Shown here one piece after another: positions 2,414 through 10,209 of a stretch of DNA of 64,000 bases. The stretch's first letter is position 1. Each line of letters begins with the position of its first letter. Source of the DNA: Schizochytrium sp. TIO01. Taxonomy: Eukaryota; Protista; Bigyra: Labyrinthulomycetes. Location of the stretch: assembly GCA_004764695.1 (NCBI GenBank), contig SMSO01000007.1:1805270-1869269 (forward strand), given 5' to 3'. Made by a program: the position numbers and the translations under genes. The notes under the pieces were generated by a model. The model was not told the origin of the DNA and did not search any database. It saw only the letters and a program-made list of their open reading frames with translations.

Positions 2414-4549
2414 TCTCCTTCGTCTGTTAAGCTCGTGGACCAGGACTGCTAGTGATACATAGTCTCCCGCGTAGTAGTCCCTGGTCTTCTCCATATCTGG
2501 TGGCTTTGCTCTGAAAAGGCATTTTTGATGGGTACGATGAGATGCTTTGGAGAAGAGAAACCCAGTCTTGCTCGTGCTAATGGCGATGATGGGCCTCGCT
2601 CGCGTCCCTGATTTCTTACGAGAGATTGCCGATGAAAACCAAAGTCTCCTCAAAGTGAAGGTATCGAACACGACTTGGGCGGAGCTGTAGGTGCTCGTTT
2701 TGTCATATGAGCGTAGAAGAAAAGTAGGCCTGGACCAGTGCTTTTTAATCCCAACTTCTTTACATAAATGGGGTAGTGCTTTCTTTCCACATCAGAGTCG
2801 TCACGTCCGAAGCTTTCTGTGACCAGAGATCTCAAGGTGCCTAAGCAGAGTCTCAAGCGTCAGCGGCTTCATCAGCTTGGAGCAGAGGGCCTGCTTAGAC
2901 TGCTCGTCTCTTTGAGTTGCCTTTATTTTCTGCTCTAGCCCTCTCATTGAACTAAGCATCAGGACGCCTCAGCTCCAATCAATCGCCAGAGGTGACAGAT
3001 CCCATTTGTCGTTCCCGCGAGGTACTGGATTCTGGATGGCGAGAGTCCCATGAATGTCAGAATGAGAAAGAGATTCTGAAGGTAGAAGGTAAGGTGAAAA
3101 GTGGAGAAAACCTGGAGAAGAAGACGATTCGAAAAGTGGAAAGTATCGAGATACAGAAGAAGTCGTCGTAGAGAATAAATAGTCCTGGTCTTGGAATACT
3201 AACCATGATGGACTGACTCACTGATAAAGCGGGATAGGATGTATATTCGATGAAAGGAGAAGAGATAAATCAGCCTGACAGGTTGAAGGAGATTGAGGAC
3301 TAAAGGACTTACGAATGGACACGATGCTTCTGGTAAGATTGGTCCAAGCCAATTGCAATCTAAAGTTAAATTTAAGTTCTAGTGCAAGAACATACATCTT
3401 TATGGTGATAAGGACCAATTCATTCCTAAATTTGCCGCACTTCTTATGTTAAGTTCTATGAATAAAATGCAAAACTGTAATTAAAGGAAAAACCAATACA
3501 TTACTGTGCTACTGTTGAACTCCATCGGGGCATCACAATTCCACAAAGTTTTCAAGTTTCAATCGATCGAAGGAGCCAAAGAGGTCAATGCTGACTTTTG
3601 GGTTCTAATTTTTGTCAGCTTAATTACACACCGTACCGACTCAAATGAAATCCCTCTTCATATGAATGCTTGCTCGTTTTCTTAAACTGCATGAGTTTCG
3701 AGCAATTGTATGCTTAGCCTTGTTTAAACTATCTTATAAAGTAAAGTTTGAGAGACTCGTGGTGAACGAACGTTTTTTTATTAATCTACAAACAGTTGAC
3801 CTTTATTAACTGTGAATATTATTTTAATTCTTGAAAAGCTACTCCTCACCTTTTTGGCCACTCATCAAAGCTTAGATGTTCCGCCCCTTTCGTGCAGACC
3901 TCCTTTTGTCTCCCTTTATCCATTCCGCTTTCCTCAGTGCGCTTGAAAGTTTCTTTTGGCTGTTACCAGCCGCATTACGATTGCCCCAATTGAAATATTG
4001 AGAAGATAAAAGATAGGTGCGAAAGCAGCGTTTATTTTGAATTAGGTGTAGCTATGTAATCTTAGTGATTGGCCAAGCTCTCGTTGAGCTTTCGAGGCGA
4101 CAAACTCACAATCTCCACAACCGAGCTTTCGCGCTTGGCGCGAGCAGGGAGAACCGCGAGGCGTCGTGGTGGACGTACATCGGGGTGCAAACCGCCTGCC
4201 GCGAGAGCGAGCAGCTCTGCAAGAGCACAGAGTGGTGTGCCGTTTACCGACAACTCAGATCTTCTGTTTAGCTTCTTCTTCGCCTTCAGGGTTAGGTGCG
4301 GCGGACTTCGTGCTTGTGCTCGTGACTTGTGAAAGAAGGGTCGCTTGCTCCACCTCGGTGACCTTTAGGAAAGGTCAAAAGAGTGGAATTGGTGAGCTCT
4401 GGAATCCTTGTGTTTGCAGGAGGGTTGATTTCTTGGAAAGCATAACATAGTAGCAACGAAGGCAGTTGTGTTCAGTCAAATCGTAGCTAGGGTCCAATAA
4501 AACTGTTGACGAAGGTAGATTAAACTTAACTTTAGGTTCTTAAGGCAGG

Positions 4550-7258
4550 ATGAGCAGTGCGCATGTTGTAGACGTGACCCATACACGGGAGTCTTTGCTA
4601 GGCGAGGAGGTTTTGGCTCTGTTCGACAAGAGATGTGGCCAGCTGATGATGAAGATCTTAGAGGAGCGCGAAGGTCCCGCACAGGCGAACCCTGATGATA
4701 GCGTCATTGAAATTGAGGCACGTACGGGTGTGAAGGAAAACAACAATTTCGTCCCTGGCGTTAGCAAATCTTTTTTTAGGAGCATGCTCGATTATTTCCT
4801 CAAAAAAGAGAAGAGTGGCACATGGCTTAGAGCTGACGATCGCTCTAAGAAAGTAGGATTTAAACACTCTGATCATGTAGATGTGACCTTTGAGGATGAT
4901 ATCAGGGTTACTGTGAAACTTATTCGGGACTCAAACGAAAGAGTCAGAGATATAGAGGTCCAGGAAGTGATTACGAAACGCAAACTTGGTAAACCAGTTG
5001 ACTTTGTTGTGCGGGCCCCACAGCACGGTGATAAAATTCATTTACGCATCGGAAACGCTGTTGAAGAACGTGTTGCAGAGAACTCATCCGCCTATTTAAC
5101 CCATGTCAAGGCTGCCAAGCGTGCGATCTTAGATGCTTTTAATGTATCTACGCGTGTAAAGGTCCTCGGGGGCATCGATCTCACCCTACGCAAAGAAGCT
5201 CCACCCGTATATCTATTCTTTCCTACGAATGGGGAATCGCTTGCTCGAGGACCCATGGGCTTTGATGATCCTTTGTATACGATGGCCTCTCGCCATGAAG
5301 ATATGCTTGATGTTCGCATTGCAGGCCAGTTAAAGTGGACACTTCTGCAACCTTCAAATTTGCCAGGCTGCAAGGGCCGGCCAGATGCAATCCTACGTGA
5401 CAAAAAGACACTAGACCCCAAAATCAACCTTACCAACCTTCCTGGTTGTATTGACCTTGGCCATGGTAATATGTACGCTGCTTATGCCTGTCAGTATATT
5501 ATTCGCGTCCCTCTCACAGATGTTTTGTGCGGCCACGGCAAGTTTGCGAAGGACACAGTTGTCGAGGAACCTGACATGGATGATGAGCGTGACATGCCGG
5601 CTGTTAAAGTGTTCCGTCGCAAGATTCGTTGGTCATTTGAGTTGAGACACAATCAGCATTTGGACATGACCGAGACGCGCCAATCTAGTAACCTCAATAC
5701 ACTCGATCATGAGACGCCAGTCTTTGAAGTTGAGCTCGAAAAAACACTGTCTTCGACGGGGTGTCGTAACAGGTCCCTCAACGAGCTTGCTGTTGATCTC
5801 CGTGCGCATACTCTCGCAGACGAGTTTCTGGTGGATATTGCAAGTCGCATTTATGGCCACGCGCTGCCTCCGCTTGCCTTAGATAAGGTACCCCGGCGCT
5901 GGCGTGATCAAGCTGAAAAGGATAAGACTCGCGTGAAAAGATTTGGTTCTGATCTTGAACAAGCCGATGAGCGCGCCAAGGATTCATATAAAGATGCTAT
6001 GCAACTTGATGCTCCTGAACTCGCCGACCAGAAAGGTACCGCTGGGTTTTACAATAAGCTCGACCGTTCTTCTGATGCAAAGCGCTGCGACAGTCTCATC
6101 TATCATTTGCGTTGCCTCAACAACTTTGTGAAAAATGTTGTTATTAAGGAAGCACTTGCTCGGTCCTTAGAAAACTCAGTTCGCGAACCCGGTAGTGGAA
6201 TCCATGTCCTTGATCTAGCGTGTGGTAAGGGAGCCGATATGCGTAAGATAATGAGTGCCGCTAAGTCACTGAAGGTCCGTATTGATCAATACGTAGGTGT
6301 GGATATTGCTCGCAACTCACTGGAAGATGCAGTGAGTCGCCTAGACTCGATGCCTGCAAAGCAACGCCCCAATTTTCGCATTCAATACGTGGAGGCTGAC
6401 CTCGGTCAACATTTTCTCAGTTCGGAGCCAGATAGCGAAAACGACTTCAAATTGCTGGAACAATGGGACAGTCAAACTCAAACTTGGACAAAACAACCAC
6501 CTAGTCGAACAATACCGTTGTCCAGTCGCTTTGATTTGGTAACGATGCAGTTTTCCATGCATTACATGTTTCAAAACTATGAACGTGCCCATCACTTTTT
6601 CTCTACACTCAGCCAGCATATGCGCCCTGGTAGTGTTTTCATCGCAACCACTGTATATGCGGATGAAATGGTAAGCAAGTTAATGCAAGCTGGCCCTGGC
6701 GAAACTTCATTCTCTATTAAGGATGGTTTTGGTGTTGAAACTTGCAGAGTTCAGTTTGACCCTAATTTTCTTTCTCAGTTTAAACCAGGCGATGTAGACG
6801 GCGATGCTAACATGGAAGATGCTGAGGCTAACAAACCTGATGAAATGATGGGAATTCGTTATACCTTTACATTGTTAGATGGTGAGTCTGATGATGCACA
6901 AGCTGTTAACGCTCCTGAATGGCTTGTCCCTCAGGCTTTGTTAGTAAAGGTTGCTACAGCTCACAATTTTAACCTTGTGCGATATGAACGCTTGCCCAAC
7001 TGCGCTTCTCGCCACATCAACTATGACGGAAATCGCTCGGATGCTCTGTATCGACACATGAATGTGCTTAATCATCGTGGCACAGTATCTGGTCCCGAGT
7101 GGGACATCGCGTCCCTCTATGTGGTTGTGGAGCTTCAGAAAGAGGAGAAACCAACACATGTGCGACAAGCTATTGCCCGCCTGAAAGAGCGCGTTGCAGA
7201 CTATAAGGATCTCTCCGCCGCAGAGAAACAGCGTCTGCTTGATAGCATTATGAAATAA
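4550..7258 (+). CDS. mRNA capping protein: N-terminal TTM/CYTH-type RNA 5'-triphosphatase fused to C-terminal cap guanine-N7 methyltransferase (RNMT/Abd1 type)
   Basis: 902-aa ORF. TTM motifs: EIEARTG (aa 54), RVT, TKRKL, HLRIGNAVEE, RRKIRWSF, LDMTET, FEVELE (aa 392). MTase motifs: IYHLRCLNNFVKNVVI, VLDLACGKGAD, YVGVDIA, FDLVTMQFSMHYMF, PEWLV, GTVSGPEWDIASLY. Confidence 0.9.
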   Translation: MSSAHVVDVTHTRESLLGEEVLALFDKRCGQLMMKILEEREGPAQANPDDSVIEIEARTGVKENNNFVPGVSKSFFRSMLDYFLKKEKSGTWLRADDRSKKVGFKHSDHVDVTFEDDIRVTVKLIRDSNERVRDIEVQEVITKRKLGKPVDFVVRAPQHGDKIHLRIGNAVEERVAENSSAYLTHVKAAKRAILDAFNVSTRVKVLGGIDLTLRKEAPPVYLFFPTNGESLARGPMGFDDPLYTMASRHEDMLDVRIAGQLKWTLLQPSNLPGCKGRPDAILRDKKTLDPKINLTNLPGCIDLGHGNMYAAYACQYIIRVPLTDVLCGHGKFAKDTVVEEPDMDDERDMPAVKVFRRKIRWSFELRHNQHLDMTETRQSSNLNTLDHETPVFEVELEKTLSSTGCRNRSLNELAVDLRAHTLADEFLVDIASRIYGHALPPLALDKVPRRWRDQAEKDKTRVKRFGSDLEQADERAKDSYKDAMQLDAPELADQKGTAGFYNKLDRSSDAKRCDSLIYHLRCLNNFVKNVVIKEALARSLENSVREPGSGIHVLDLACGKGADMRKIMSAAKSLKVRIDQYVGVDIARNSLEDAVSRLDSMPAKQRPNFRIQYVEADLGQHFLSSEPDSENDFKLLEQWDSQTQTWTKQPPSRTIPLSSRFDLVTMQFSMHYMFQNYERAHHFFSTLSQHMRPGSVFIATTVYADEMVSKLMQAGPGETSFSIKDGFGVETCRVQFDPNFLSQFKPGDVDGDANMEDAEANKPDEMMGIRYTFTLLDGESDDAQAVNAPEWLVPQALLVKVATAHNFNLVRYERLPNCASRHINYDGNRSDALYRHMNVLNHRGTVSGPEWDIASLYVVVELQKEEKPTHVRQAIARLKERVADYKDLSAAEKQRLLDSIMK

Positions 7259-7809: not shown

Positions 7810-10209
7810 TCATGCCATTACCGAAAAGGCTAAGGACTGAAACTGAAGGTCAATGCGCTGGTGTTGGGTATCATCAATTCTCAATTCTTCAAGAGCGACA
7901 GGAAGCCATCTGAGTTTTGCCAACTCTAGCGGAGGAAGCTGAAGAGCCCCACGAAGAAATATCTTACGTAAAGAAAAGTGACTTCGCATGCTGAAGAGTT
8001 TAGAAATCTTGGAGCACCATGAAAGATCTACTACTTCGAGTGACGTGCAGTCTTCAAGAGGACTTACATCATGGATGCCACTACACATGGTTAAATAAAC
8101 TTCACGCAAATTGCGACAAGACCGAAGAATTTCAATACTGCGGAGCTGTACACAGCGCTTAATATCTAAATAGACTAGAGATTTGGCACAAGCTGCAAGG
8201 CCCGAGAGATCCATTAAACGCACGCCACTTCGAATTGTCACACGCTCCAGTATACATGAGGAATCGAAGTGTGGGAGAGACGTAAGACTCCCATTCGCTG
8301 AGAGATCCAACGTACGGCAACGTTTGGCGCGAACAACTGGCTCAAATGCTGAAAGTTTTAGGCTGCCCGACAGAACAAGGGTGTGCAAATCGCGAAAACA
8401 TGGAGAACTTACGGACGTGAGTGCACTGCAGCCCTTAAGTGTAAAGGAGCGCAGCCCGCAACCTCCTCCTTGGTGTGTCCACGAGAGATTTGTCAGTGAA
8501 CGACACTCCACTAATGTGAGATAGTCGAGCCGCGAGAAGACTGCAAGTCGCGGCATTTTTTCTACGCGTTTGGCCTGCATGATTGAAAGATGACGTAGCG
8601 CATTCCCAGGGGCAAGGGCCTCAAGGCTTATTAAAGATTTACCTTGAAATTGGCGGATCTCCAATTCTCTCAATTTTGGCAGAAGAGGAAAACTGGTCAT
8701 TATGGTATCGTCAATTTCATCTTTGTTAGTTTGGAACGTCAACGTTAGGTGGCGCAAGTTTTCAAGACGCGTAAAAACTTGCGTATCAAAGGCCTCACCC
8801 ACGGTTGTCTCAAGTTTCTGTAAGTGTCGAAAACTTCTCGTGAGATCACAAATGGAGGTTAATCGAAGACGGATGCCTTCCAGGATAAGACTTCGACAAT
8901 GTGAGATTCCCATCCCGGCAGGAAAGGTGTCAAGGGTCCAAATTCCGACTGGGACGGTTATGTGTACAGAATCAATCTTTGTCAGGTAGCGGAGATGCAC
9001 AAGAGTACTATCTGAGTCACGATGGCTCGGCGGAAGCTTGAGCCGTCGAAAATTAATTCTAAGACTCATCATTCCAGGGGCCCAACATTTATGCTCGAGA
9101 ATCTCACGTGGGTGCCCTTCAACGGCCCAGAGATCTAAATACATAGTTTCAAGGCCAGCGCAGCCTTTTGCGAATTTGCAAAAGCCGGCTGTGCATGACG
9201 CAGTGACAAGTTCACATGAGGTCATCTTGAATGAACGTAAACGCGGATTTCCTGGGCCGAAGCGCTCTACTTTGGCATCGTGCAACGTAAAAGAGTGTAG
9301 ATTCGGTAAGCTATTGAGAAAGGTCAGGTCGACCACAGTGCCATTCCCGAGTAATGTGAGCCTTTGAAGCGTCTTCATCGCCGCAAGCGTTTCTGCAGCA
9401 AGTAACCAATCGCTTTCAATATCCACAGATAGAGCTAGAAGGTTCGGAAACTTTTCCTGTCGTAACTCCGCAAGCGCGCTTCGTGAGCATCCATGGAACT
9501 GTAGATTTCTCAGTTCGCCAAAGTCCTTCGCCATAGCTACCAAACTGTGAATTTTATGTCCCTTTTGGCACGCGATCCACAGTGTATCCATTCGCTCGCC
9601 TGCCATGAATTTATCAAGAATTCCTTGAAGTTGTTCCTTCGTAAGATCAATAGTTACGTCCGTAATTTTAAGTTTTCGTGCGATCGCTGCCGCTTGATCA
9701 GTCACAACTCCGAGTTGTGAGATTGCAGCCTGTGCAAAACGCAAATCCTCAGCGCAAGGGAACCTTTTTGCAAGTGCCGCAAGCTGAGTAGGTCGCAACA
9801 TTCTCATATGATTTATGACCAAAGACTGCACATGTGGCTCGGCTTCGTCACGAGACGATTCTGGGAAGCGCGCCAGTGAGAGTCTTCCTGTAGATCTTGG
9901 AATGTATGACACGCTGCCATCAGCATGACGCTGCTCCACCGCGGCACCCTCGAGGCCATCGACAACTCTCCCACGCACAACTGCGTTTGGGCCAAGACCA
10001 GCTGCCTCTTGACGCCACGAGCTACCACTGCGAGAGCCGGGGTATCGAGCTCGAGCTCGGATCTCCTGAATGGGTGTGAGCCAGATCTCGAGAGGCTCGC
10101 GATCTAAGTCGCGACGAAGACTCTGGCAAGTGCAACGAAGAGCTCGCAATCCTTCAAGGCTGACGAAGGGAGCCACGCTAATGGCGACATCCTCAAGGCA
10201 ACGTGGCAT
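7810..10209 (-). CDS. F-box / leucine-rich repeat protein
   Basis: 799-aa ORF. N-terminal F-box-like segment (LEDVAISVAPFVSLEGLRALRCTCQSLRR) and many LRR units (LxxLxLxxCxxL; e.g. LVYLDIKRCVQLRSI, LEVVDLSWCSKI). Confidence 0.8.
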   Translation of the reverse strand: MPRCLEDVAISVAPFVSLEGLRALRCTCQSLRRDLDREPLEIWLTPIQEIRARARYPGSRSGSSWRQEAAGLGPNAVVRGRVVDGLEGAAVEQRHADGSVSYIPRSTGRLSLARFPESSRDEAEPHVQSLVINHMRMLRPTQLAALAKRFPCAEDLRFAQAAISQLGVVTDQAAAIARKLKITDVTIDLTKEQLQGILDKFMAGERMDTLWIACQKGHKIHSLVAMAKDFGELRNLQFHGCSRSALAELRQEKFPNLLALSVDIESDWLLAAETLAAMKTLQRLTLLGNGTVVDLTFLNSLPNLHSFTLHDAKVERFGPGNPRLRSFKMTSCELVTASCTAGFCKFAKGCAGLETMYLDLWAVEGHPREILEHKCWAPGMMSLRINFRRLKLPPSHRDSDSTLVHLRYLTKIDSVHITVPVGIWTLDTFPAGMGISHCRSLILEGIRLRLTSICDLTRSFRHLQKLETTVGEAFDTQVFTRLENLRHLTLTFQTNKDEIDDTIMTSFPLLPKLRELEIRQFQGKSLISLEALAPGNALRHLSIMQAKRVEKMPRLAVFSRLDYLTLVECRSLTNLSWTHQGGGCGLRSFTLKGCSALTSVSSPCFRDLHTLVLSGSLKLSAFEPVVRAKRCRTLDLSANGSLTSLPHFDSSCILERVTIRSGVRLMDLSGLAACAKSLVYLDIKRCVQLRSIEILRSCRNLREVYLTMCSGIHDVSPLEDCTSLEVVDLSWCSKISKLFSMRSHFSLRKIFLRGALQLPPLELAKLRWLPVALEELRIDDTQHQRIDLQFQSLAFSVMA

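Follow-up and report, generated by a model that had tools for sequence, protein, structure and literature searches.

The stretch analyzed here, hereafter the window, comprises 64,000 nucleotides of the genome of the labyrinthulomycete Schizochytrium sp. TIO01 (GenBank assembly GCA_004764695.1, contig SMSO01000007.1, positions 1,805,270 to 1,869,269 of the forward strand). On its plus strand, at nt 4550–7258, lies a gene for a predicted mRNA capping enzyme that joins a triphosphate tunnel metalloenzyme (TTM) RNA triphosphatase (TPase) to a cap guanine-N7 methyltransferase (MTase); its domains and motifs are described below with coordinates on the same strand. The gene is an intronless open reading frame (ORF) for 902 amino acids, unbroken and free of internal stops, which ends at a stop codon at nt 7256–7258 and has an in-frame stop 9 nt before its ATG, at nt 4541. 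The same 902-aa protein, identical at all residues, is encoded as a complete ORF by a single 3250-nt transcript from MMETSP (sample MMETSP0960), so that the one fused gene described in an earlier note on this DNA, which had proposed a check for two separate transcripts, is borne out at the RNA level. Full-length orthologs likewise occur on transcript-sized contigs: P0027 from Mucochytrium quahogii (903 aa on 3287 nt), P0004 (901 aa on 3210 nt) and P0011 (890 aa on 2922 nt). The header of the MMETSP0960 record carries taxon id 87120, which belongs to the fungus Rhizopogon burlinghamii and is probably a slip of transposed digits for 87102, Aurantiochytrium limacinum; the sample and the 73% identical Hondaea ortholog would both fit Aurantiochytrium.

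Capping proceeds in three steps, in which a TPase generates ppRNA, a guanylyltransferase (GTase) forms GpppRNA via a lysyl-GMP intermediate, and an MTase yields m7GpppRNA (PMC4371356, PMC5027499). The N-terminal part of the window protein has the organization of a TPase of the Cet1 type. The first half of a triphosphate tunnel (aa 50–175, nt 4697–5074; strands 51–63, 104–114, 118–126, 132–145, 150–156 and 164–174) is indicated by a structural model and by a profile match to Trypanosoma cruzi Cet1, and the second half (aa 351–401, nt 5600–5752; strands 352–366, 369–379 and 391–401) by the model and by a profile match to the mimivirus TPase. An N-terminal helix (aa 16–41, nt 4595–4672) aligns with the helix ahead of the Cet1 barrel, and helices at aa 410–436 (nt 5777–5857) close the Cet1-like domain in the model alignment to Cet1.

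The motifs expected of such a tunnel are all present. Motif A, EIEAR (E54, E56 and R58; nt 4709–4723), provides the metal-binding glutamates of strand β1 and is invariant in the homologs having this region. RRKIRWS (R356, K358 and R360; nt 5615–5635) forms the basic phosphate-binding strand, and motif C, EVELE (E393, E395 and E397; nt 5726–5740), provides the metal-binding glutamates of the last strand; both are invariant in nine fused proteins. For each of the corresponding patterns, ExEx[RK], RxKxRxS and ExExE, the 902-aa protein has a single instance, and EIEAR (nt 4709, aa 54) and FEVELE (nt 5723, aa 392) begin exactly where the earlier note had placed them. That note had assigned the whole of the N-terminal ~400 aa between these motifs to a TTM domain; the domain assignment stands, and the same span also holds a 175-aa accessory module inside the barrel. 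Conservation extends beyond the motifs: E54, E56, R58, R119, K143, R166 and E172 are conserved in all homologs having this region, the basic tunnel residues R119, K143 and R166 are also invariant in the fused proteins, and R356, K358, R360, T374, E393, E395 and E397 are invariant among the nine.

A phmmer search with aa 1–417 against 1.84 billion representatives recovered 16 relatives in all, and the stand-alone proteins P0013 (Blastocystis, KAK8790906.1) and P0014 were linked to the N-terminal domain at E-values of 4e-8 and 1e-7, respectively. The cut-off of the Pfam family PF02940 is passed by the homologs P0006 (25.4 bits), P0013 (34.5 bits) and P0014 (39.6 bits). When compared with proteins of solved structure, the family profile matched T. 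cruzi Cet1 in the first barrel half (E 1.9e-7), with iEvEaRlG aligned to IEVEMRLG and LRvgvavE to LRFAVSTE. In the second barrel half, it matched the mimivirus TPase (E 3.5e-7), the best sequence-level match in the PDB for this part, with RrKkRtSf, lDvTetR and fEvElE aligned to RYKTRYSF, IDITDVK and YELELE. In the window protein itself, EIEAR is aligned to IEVEMR of T. cruzi Cet1, and RRKIRWS and EVELE to RYKTRYS and ELELE of the mimivirus enzyme. The match of the profile to yeast Cet1 had an E-value of 0.016.

The fold was predicted for aa 1–495 with AlphaFold2 from an alignment of 17 sequences, and the resulting model is confident (mean predicted local distance difference test score, pLDDT, 85.8; predicted template modeling score, pTM, 0.78). 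Its residues 13–436 align to residues 278–533 of Cet1. All Foldseek matches at E ≤ 1e-3 and probability ≥ 0.99 are Cet1-type triphosphatases (Schizosaccharomyces pombe Pct1, T. cruzi Cet1, Saccharomyces cerevisiae Cet1 and the mimivirus enzyme, each with a probability of 1.0) or the related RESC1/2. VIA-align, a structure search independent of Foldseek, ranked Cet1 highest among the triphosphatases (Z 16.3; root mean square deviation 2.8 Å over 210 aa), followed by Pct1 (15.2), mimivirus (13.9), T. cruzi Cet1 (13.5) and vaccinia D1 (9.4), with generic CYTH/TTM enzymes at Z ≤ 8.8. For the N-terminal domain of the Hondaea ortholog, the language-model look-alikes in the ESM Atlas are likewise PF02940 clusters. 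We conclude that aa ~13–436 constitute a predicted Cet1-type triphosphate-tunnel RNA triphosphatase domain, as the sequence motifs and the model both suggest. The proposal that the N-terminus would model as a TTM tunnel is in this way upheld, with profiles reaching solved Cet1-type enzymes.

The C-terminal cap guanine-N7 MTase domain occupies aa 497–864 (nt 6038–7141; PF03291, E 3.2e-42), in agreement with the complete RNMT-like domain that had been noted at about nt 6040–7140. The match to PF03291 (145.2 bits against a cut-off of 26.6) covers profile positions 14–314 of 315, and the best solved relatives are human RNMT and Encephalitozoon Ecm1. The motif VLDLACGKGAD (aa 553–563, nt 6206–6238), which binds S-adenosylmethionine (AdoMet), is aligned to VLDLGCGKGGD of human RNMT, and so are the stretches LNNFVK, QFSMHYMF, PEWLV and SLYVV to their RNMT counterparts. 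Nine fused proteins have in common, without variation, N525, K528, D555, G559, D563, D585, R597, F668, H671, Y672, E790 and Y857, and also G561 of the AdoMet motif; among the conserved MTase positions are residues that we take to contact the cap, going by what is known of RNMT and Ecm1. The domain is 33–36% identical to ordinary stramenopile cap MTases.

Two further elements distinguish the window protein. The accessory module (aa 176–350, nt 5075–5599), composed of helices and a small β unit, sits in the barrel after the LRxxxAxE strand and ahead of the RxKxRxS strand, and its residues W263, P268 and N296 are invariant. Between the barrel domain and the MTase, a long charged helix is confidently predicted by AlphaFold2 at aa 449–486 (nt 5894–6007). 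The module is not confined to the fused proteins: it also lies inside the barrel of three stand-alone relatives (P0015–P0017), and it follows the barrel in the Blastocystis-type stand-alone proteins P0013 (aa ~287–376) and P0014 (aa ~281–348; 22.7 bits, E 2e-7 in a local hmmsearch). This conserved element has been relocated or permuted between the two types of TPase. Since the same module is found in stand-alone TPases, it is best regarded as an accessory module of this TPase clade and not as a degenerate GTase.

The remaining capping activities were sought in the whole 64-Mb assembly (37 contigs, with the window at C6:1805270-1869269). A search with PF01331 returned two loci, one of which, on contig C33, encodes a stand-alone 428-aa GTase with PF01331, PF03919 and the motif I sequence KSDG. 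The earlier note had reasoned that a separate GTase must exist, and this protein supplies one. The N-terminal domain is single-copy in the genome according to the protein search, and the PF02940-positive P0014, used as a query, matched only the window ORF, in both barrel halves; protein searches with the N-terminal domain and with P0014 thus found no further TTM RNA triphosphatase in this genome. A PF02940 profile search of the same genome yielded no matches, missed the window gene itself and was silent on its control, and is uninformative.

We consider it likely that the window gene encodes a bifunctional capping enzyme, in which a Cet1-type TPase for step 1 is combined with an RNMT/Abd1-type MTase for step 3, and step 2 is performed in trans by the 428-aa GTase. 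Such a TPase–MTase with the GTase in trans is what the earlier note had proposed, and it is supported by both domain identities and by the existence of the free GTase; no check refuted it. Both domains are presumably active, with RNA polymerase II (Pol II) transcripts as the substrate and the free GTase as the partner. The N-terminal TTM domain would remove the γ-phosphate of pppRNA, the separate, Ceg1-like GTase would carry out step 2 in trans, and the C-terminal MTase would methylate GpppRNA at guanine N7. In yeast, Cet1 binds the GTase Ceg1. In the most economical model, the fusion protein and the free GTase would form a comparable complex with the MTase attached, a non-covalent counterpart of the viral TPase–GTase–MTase chains. 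By analogy with Cet1–Ceg1, the accessory module or the linker helix would be a candidate docking surface for the GTase.

A more ambitious extension, which we put forward tentatively and hold to be somewhat doubtful, is that labyrinthulomycetes and related Bigyra use the fusion as their canonical scaffold for nuclear capping, and that its module or linker helix serves as a new docking element for the free GTase and/or the C-terminal repeats of Pol II or Spt5. If true, this would make for a non-covalent trifunctional complex arranged unlike all characterized cellular capping apparatus.

Several observations weigh against a bifunctional capping enzyme acting with the free GTase. The genome encodes a second candidate capping protein, absent from the earlier note; the PF02940 score of the window protein (16.2–19.4 bits) lies below the Pfam gathering threshold of 24; the fold of the N-terminal domain is that of a predicted structure; and the Cet1-like fold is found in non-catalytic proteins too, as RESC1/2 reach VIA-align Z scores of 12.8–14.3.

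The second PF01331 locus, on contig C31 (L003 25..3375, minus strand), encodes a 1116-aa protein with NIF (PF03031), PF01331, PF03919 and PF03291 domains. Given this NIF–GTase–MTase protein, the fusion and the free GTase need not be the sole capping route. The C31 protein could itself be the main nuclear capping enzyme, leaving the TTM–MTase fusion, with or without the free GTase, a specialized or redundant role in capping another RNA class, in re-capping or in another compartment. Such an assignment would fit the presence of all four domains on one chain, and two MTases and two GTases in one genome imply some division of labor. On the other hand, the window MTase groups with ordinary stramenopile cap MTases, whereas the MTase of the C31 protein is an outlier with a very long branch in the tree and matches the window MTase with only 23% identity (70 bits). 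Both partners that the free GTase needs, a TPase and an MTase, are provided by the window gene. In the NIF domain of the C31 protein, motif I has the sequence LDLNG, whose Asn takes the place of the second Asp of phosphatases of the haloacid dehalogenase (HAD) superfamily, and phosphatase activity there is therefore uncertain. We accordingly regard a leading role for the C31 protein as rather improbable, and prefer the reading in which the fusion and the free GTase act together. Because the window MTase is closer to stramenopile MTases than to that of C31, the window gene appears to be a vertically inherited cap MTase that acquired the RNA triphosphatase of the lineage, and the free GTase would be its likeliest partner.

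The N-terminal domain might, alternatively, have a Cet1-like fold that has lost catalysis and provide the MTase with no more than a scaffold that binds RNA or proteins, in the manner of the kinetoplastid RESC1/2. The rank of RESC1/2 among the best structural matches would agree with such a role, as would the sub-threshold Pfam score, although the latter also fits the division of the domain by the 175-aa insert. We nevertheless find a non-catalytic scaffold very unlikely: all classes of catalytic tunnel residue are kept over deep divergence, namely the two glutamate motifs, the R-x-K-x-R strand, R119, K143 and E172, and the genome has no other TTM RNA triphosphatase that would perform step 1 ahead of the free GTase.

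A GTase concealed in aa 170–490, which would turn the protein into a trifunctional enzyme like those of mimiviruses and poxviruses, is suggested by nothing more than the 175 extra residues within the barrel and about 95 behind it, and was ruled out by motif, lysine, Pfam and fold searches. The 902-aa sequence is free of KxDG and even of the relaxed pattern K.[DN]G, in line with the lack of a nucleotidyltransferase motif already reported; aa 176–355 contain no invariant lysine; and PF01331 and PF03919 gave no match at E ≤ 1 on the full protein or at E ≤ 10 on N-terminal pieces. Folded by itself, the accessory module (pLDDT 77) had no structural match at Z ≥ 5 and none below a Foldseek E-value of 0.3; its top rows were SH3/KOW/Tudor-like barrels at Z 4–4.9 over about 57 residues, which is the noise range of the tool. 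No nucleotidyltransferase or oligonucleotide/oligosaccharide-binding (OB) fold was matched by the model of the module or of aa 1–495 in either Foldseek or VIA-align. The module is, moreover, shared with stand-alone TPases, and aa 401–496 are helical. The region between barrel and MTase leaves no room for a GTase because the helices at aa 410–436 align with Cet1 and aa 449–486 form one long helix; the ~100-aa spacer of the earlier note is thus indeed too short for this enzyme, without being the empty linker that the term implied. Finally, an assembly or gene-model artefact that merged two adjacent genes is scarcely conceivable, given the continuous genomic frame, the identical complete ORF on one transcript and the recurrence of this architecture in ten or more other clusters obtained from independent sources.

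Those clusters, each combining the N-terminal domain with PF03291 and found besides the window organism, include Hondaea fermentalgiana P0002 (73% identity), Mucochytrium quahogii P0027, the JGI proteins P0003 and P0004, and P0006, P0007, P0008, P0011, P0012 and P0018 (29–38% identity). The fusion is kept in Hondaea, in Mucochytrium and in eight further clusters, with identities of 29–53%. A quick tree of the MTases placed all 11 fused proteins in a single group (support by the Shimodaira–Hasegawa-like approximate likelihood ratio test, SH-aLRT, of 87), which also took in P0046, a short sequence without the fusion. The tree of the N-terminal domain united seven fused proteins in a clade at 95, its deeper nodes being without resolution. 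Both trees, which come from quick searches only, are compatible with a single origin of the fusion. A word-based profile search returned close thraustochytrid relatives only and missed distant fused members that had been found exhaustively, so it is silent on breadth. On viral contigs, a single query with the N-terminal domain detected no relative, a result of low sensitivity that is not evidence of viral absence.

All eukaryotes possess the three capping activities, whose linkage varies by lineage and has been used as a phylogenetic marker and as an argument for drug targets. To our knowledge, the characterized cellular capping fusions all join consecutive steps, either 1 and 2 or 2 and 3. 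A conserved linkage of step 1 to step 3, with a GTase acting in trans for step 2, would add an arrangement to this repertoire, and it raises the question of how the substrate passes from the TPase to a separately encoded GTase and then to the tethered MTase. It also indicates that a TTM-type RNA triphosphatase exists in at least one stramenopile branch.

The window protein is similar to Cet1 (Z 16.3) and Pct1 (Z 15.2) in predicted fold, down to the helices that flank the barrel, and it shares with them the β1 ExExK/R and last-strand ExExE metal motifs and the basic RxKxR strand. In contrast to these separate polypeptides, its TPase domain is fused to a cap MTase, contains the 175-aa module within the barrel and has only about 19% identity to them. 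With human RNMT, yeast Abd1 and Encephalitozoon Ecm1, it shares PF03291 over the full length and the motifs VLDLxCGKGxD, NNxxK, QFxxHYxF, PEW/F and (S)xY. Those enzymes are stand-alone, RNMT having an N-terminal tail without catalytic function and RAM as its partner, whereas the window protein carries two lineage-specific MTase insertions (aa ~620–660 and 740–770) in addition to its N-terminal TPase. The capping enzymes of mimivirus (R382), poxviruses (D1), African swine fever virus (ASFV) and faustovirus likewise have an N-terminal TTM TPase and a C-terminal N7-MTase, but between them lies a GTase, made of nucleotidyltransferase and OB domains, that the window organism encodes elsewhere. P0013 and P0014 belong to the same TPase clade, pass the PF02940 cut-off and possess the same accessory module; they differ in lacking the MTase fusion and in having the module behind the barrel instead of within it. 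Two-activity fusions are known from cellular capping in Trypanosoma brucei Cgm1, a GTase–MTase, and in metazoan and plant RNGTT, a Cys-phosphatase–GTase (PMC5027499). These join consecutive steps (2 and 3, and 1 and 2, respectively), unlike the window protein, which joins the non-consecutive steps 1 and 3.

In the literature searched, which covered few subscription journals and included reviews of the known configurations, no TPase–MTase fusion is described, and no paper on labyrinthulomycete or Blastocystis capping enzymes was found. With 16 representatives among 1.84 billion, this architecture counts as rare. In databases, the orthologs are named solely "mRNA cap guanine-N7 methyltransferase" or "mRNA cap 0 methyltransferase domain-containing protein", and the TTM domain escapes routine annotation because it is split by the 175-aa module and the scores of most members lie under the Pfam threshold. 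As predicted from sequence and model, the window protein combines two well-known enzymes and an accessory module in a new arrangement, conserved in a stramenopile lineage.

Downstream of the gene, a convergent neighbor on the minus strand (7810–10209) encodes a 799-aa leucine-rich-repeat protein (PF25019, PF12799) with no evident link to capping. Among relatives, the nearest non-fused MTases bear N-termini of other kinds, such as a WW domain in Phytophthora proteins, and the MTases of Nannochloropsis, Ochromonas, Chrysophaeum and Fistulifera have long N-termini without annotation. A TTM domain hidden in the N-termini of ochrophyte or oomycete MTases was considered and gave no signal at the sensitivity of the local hidden Markov model (HMM) of the N-terminal domain. 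The oomycete cap N7-MTases P0049, P0052–P0056, P0059 and P0062 (Phytophthora spp., 540–574 aa) carry an N-terminal WW domain (PF00397) in precomputed Pfam annotation. In other proteins, WW domains bind the phosphorylated C-terminal domain of Pol II, and on these orthologous MTases the domain may be a recruitment device. The 685-aa protein P0023 from Logan matched the β1 part of the N-terminal domain HMM weakly (E 2e-6) and has precomputed PF03919 and PF03291 annotations; it is possibly a compact trifunctional capping enzyme.

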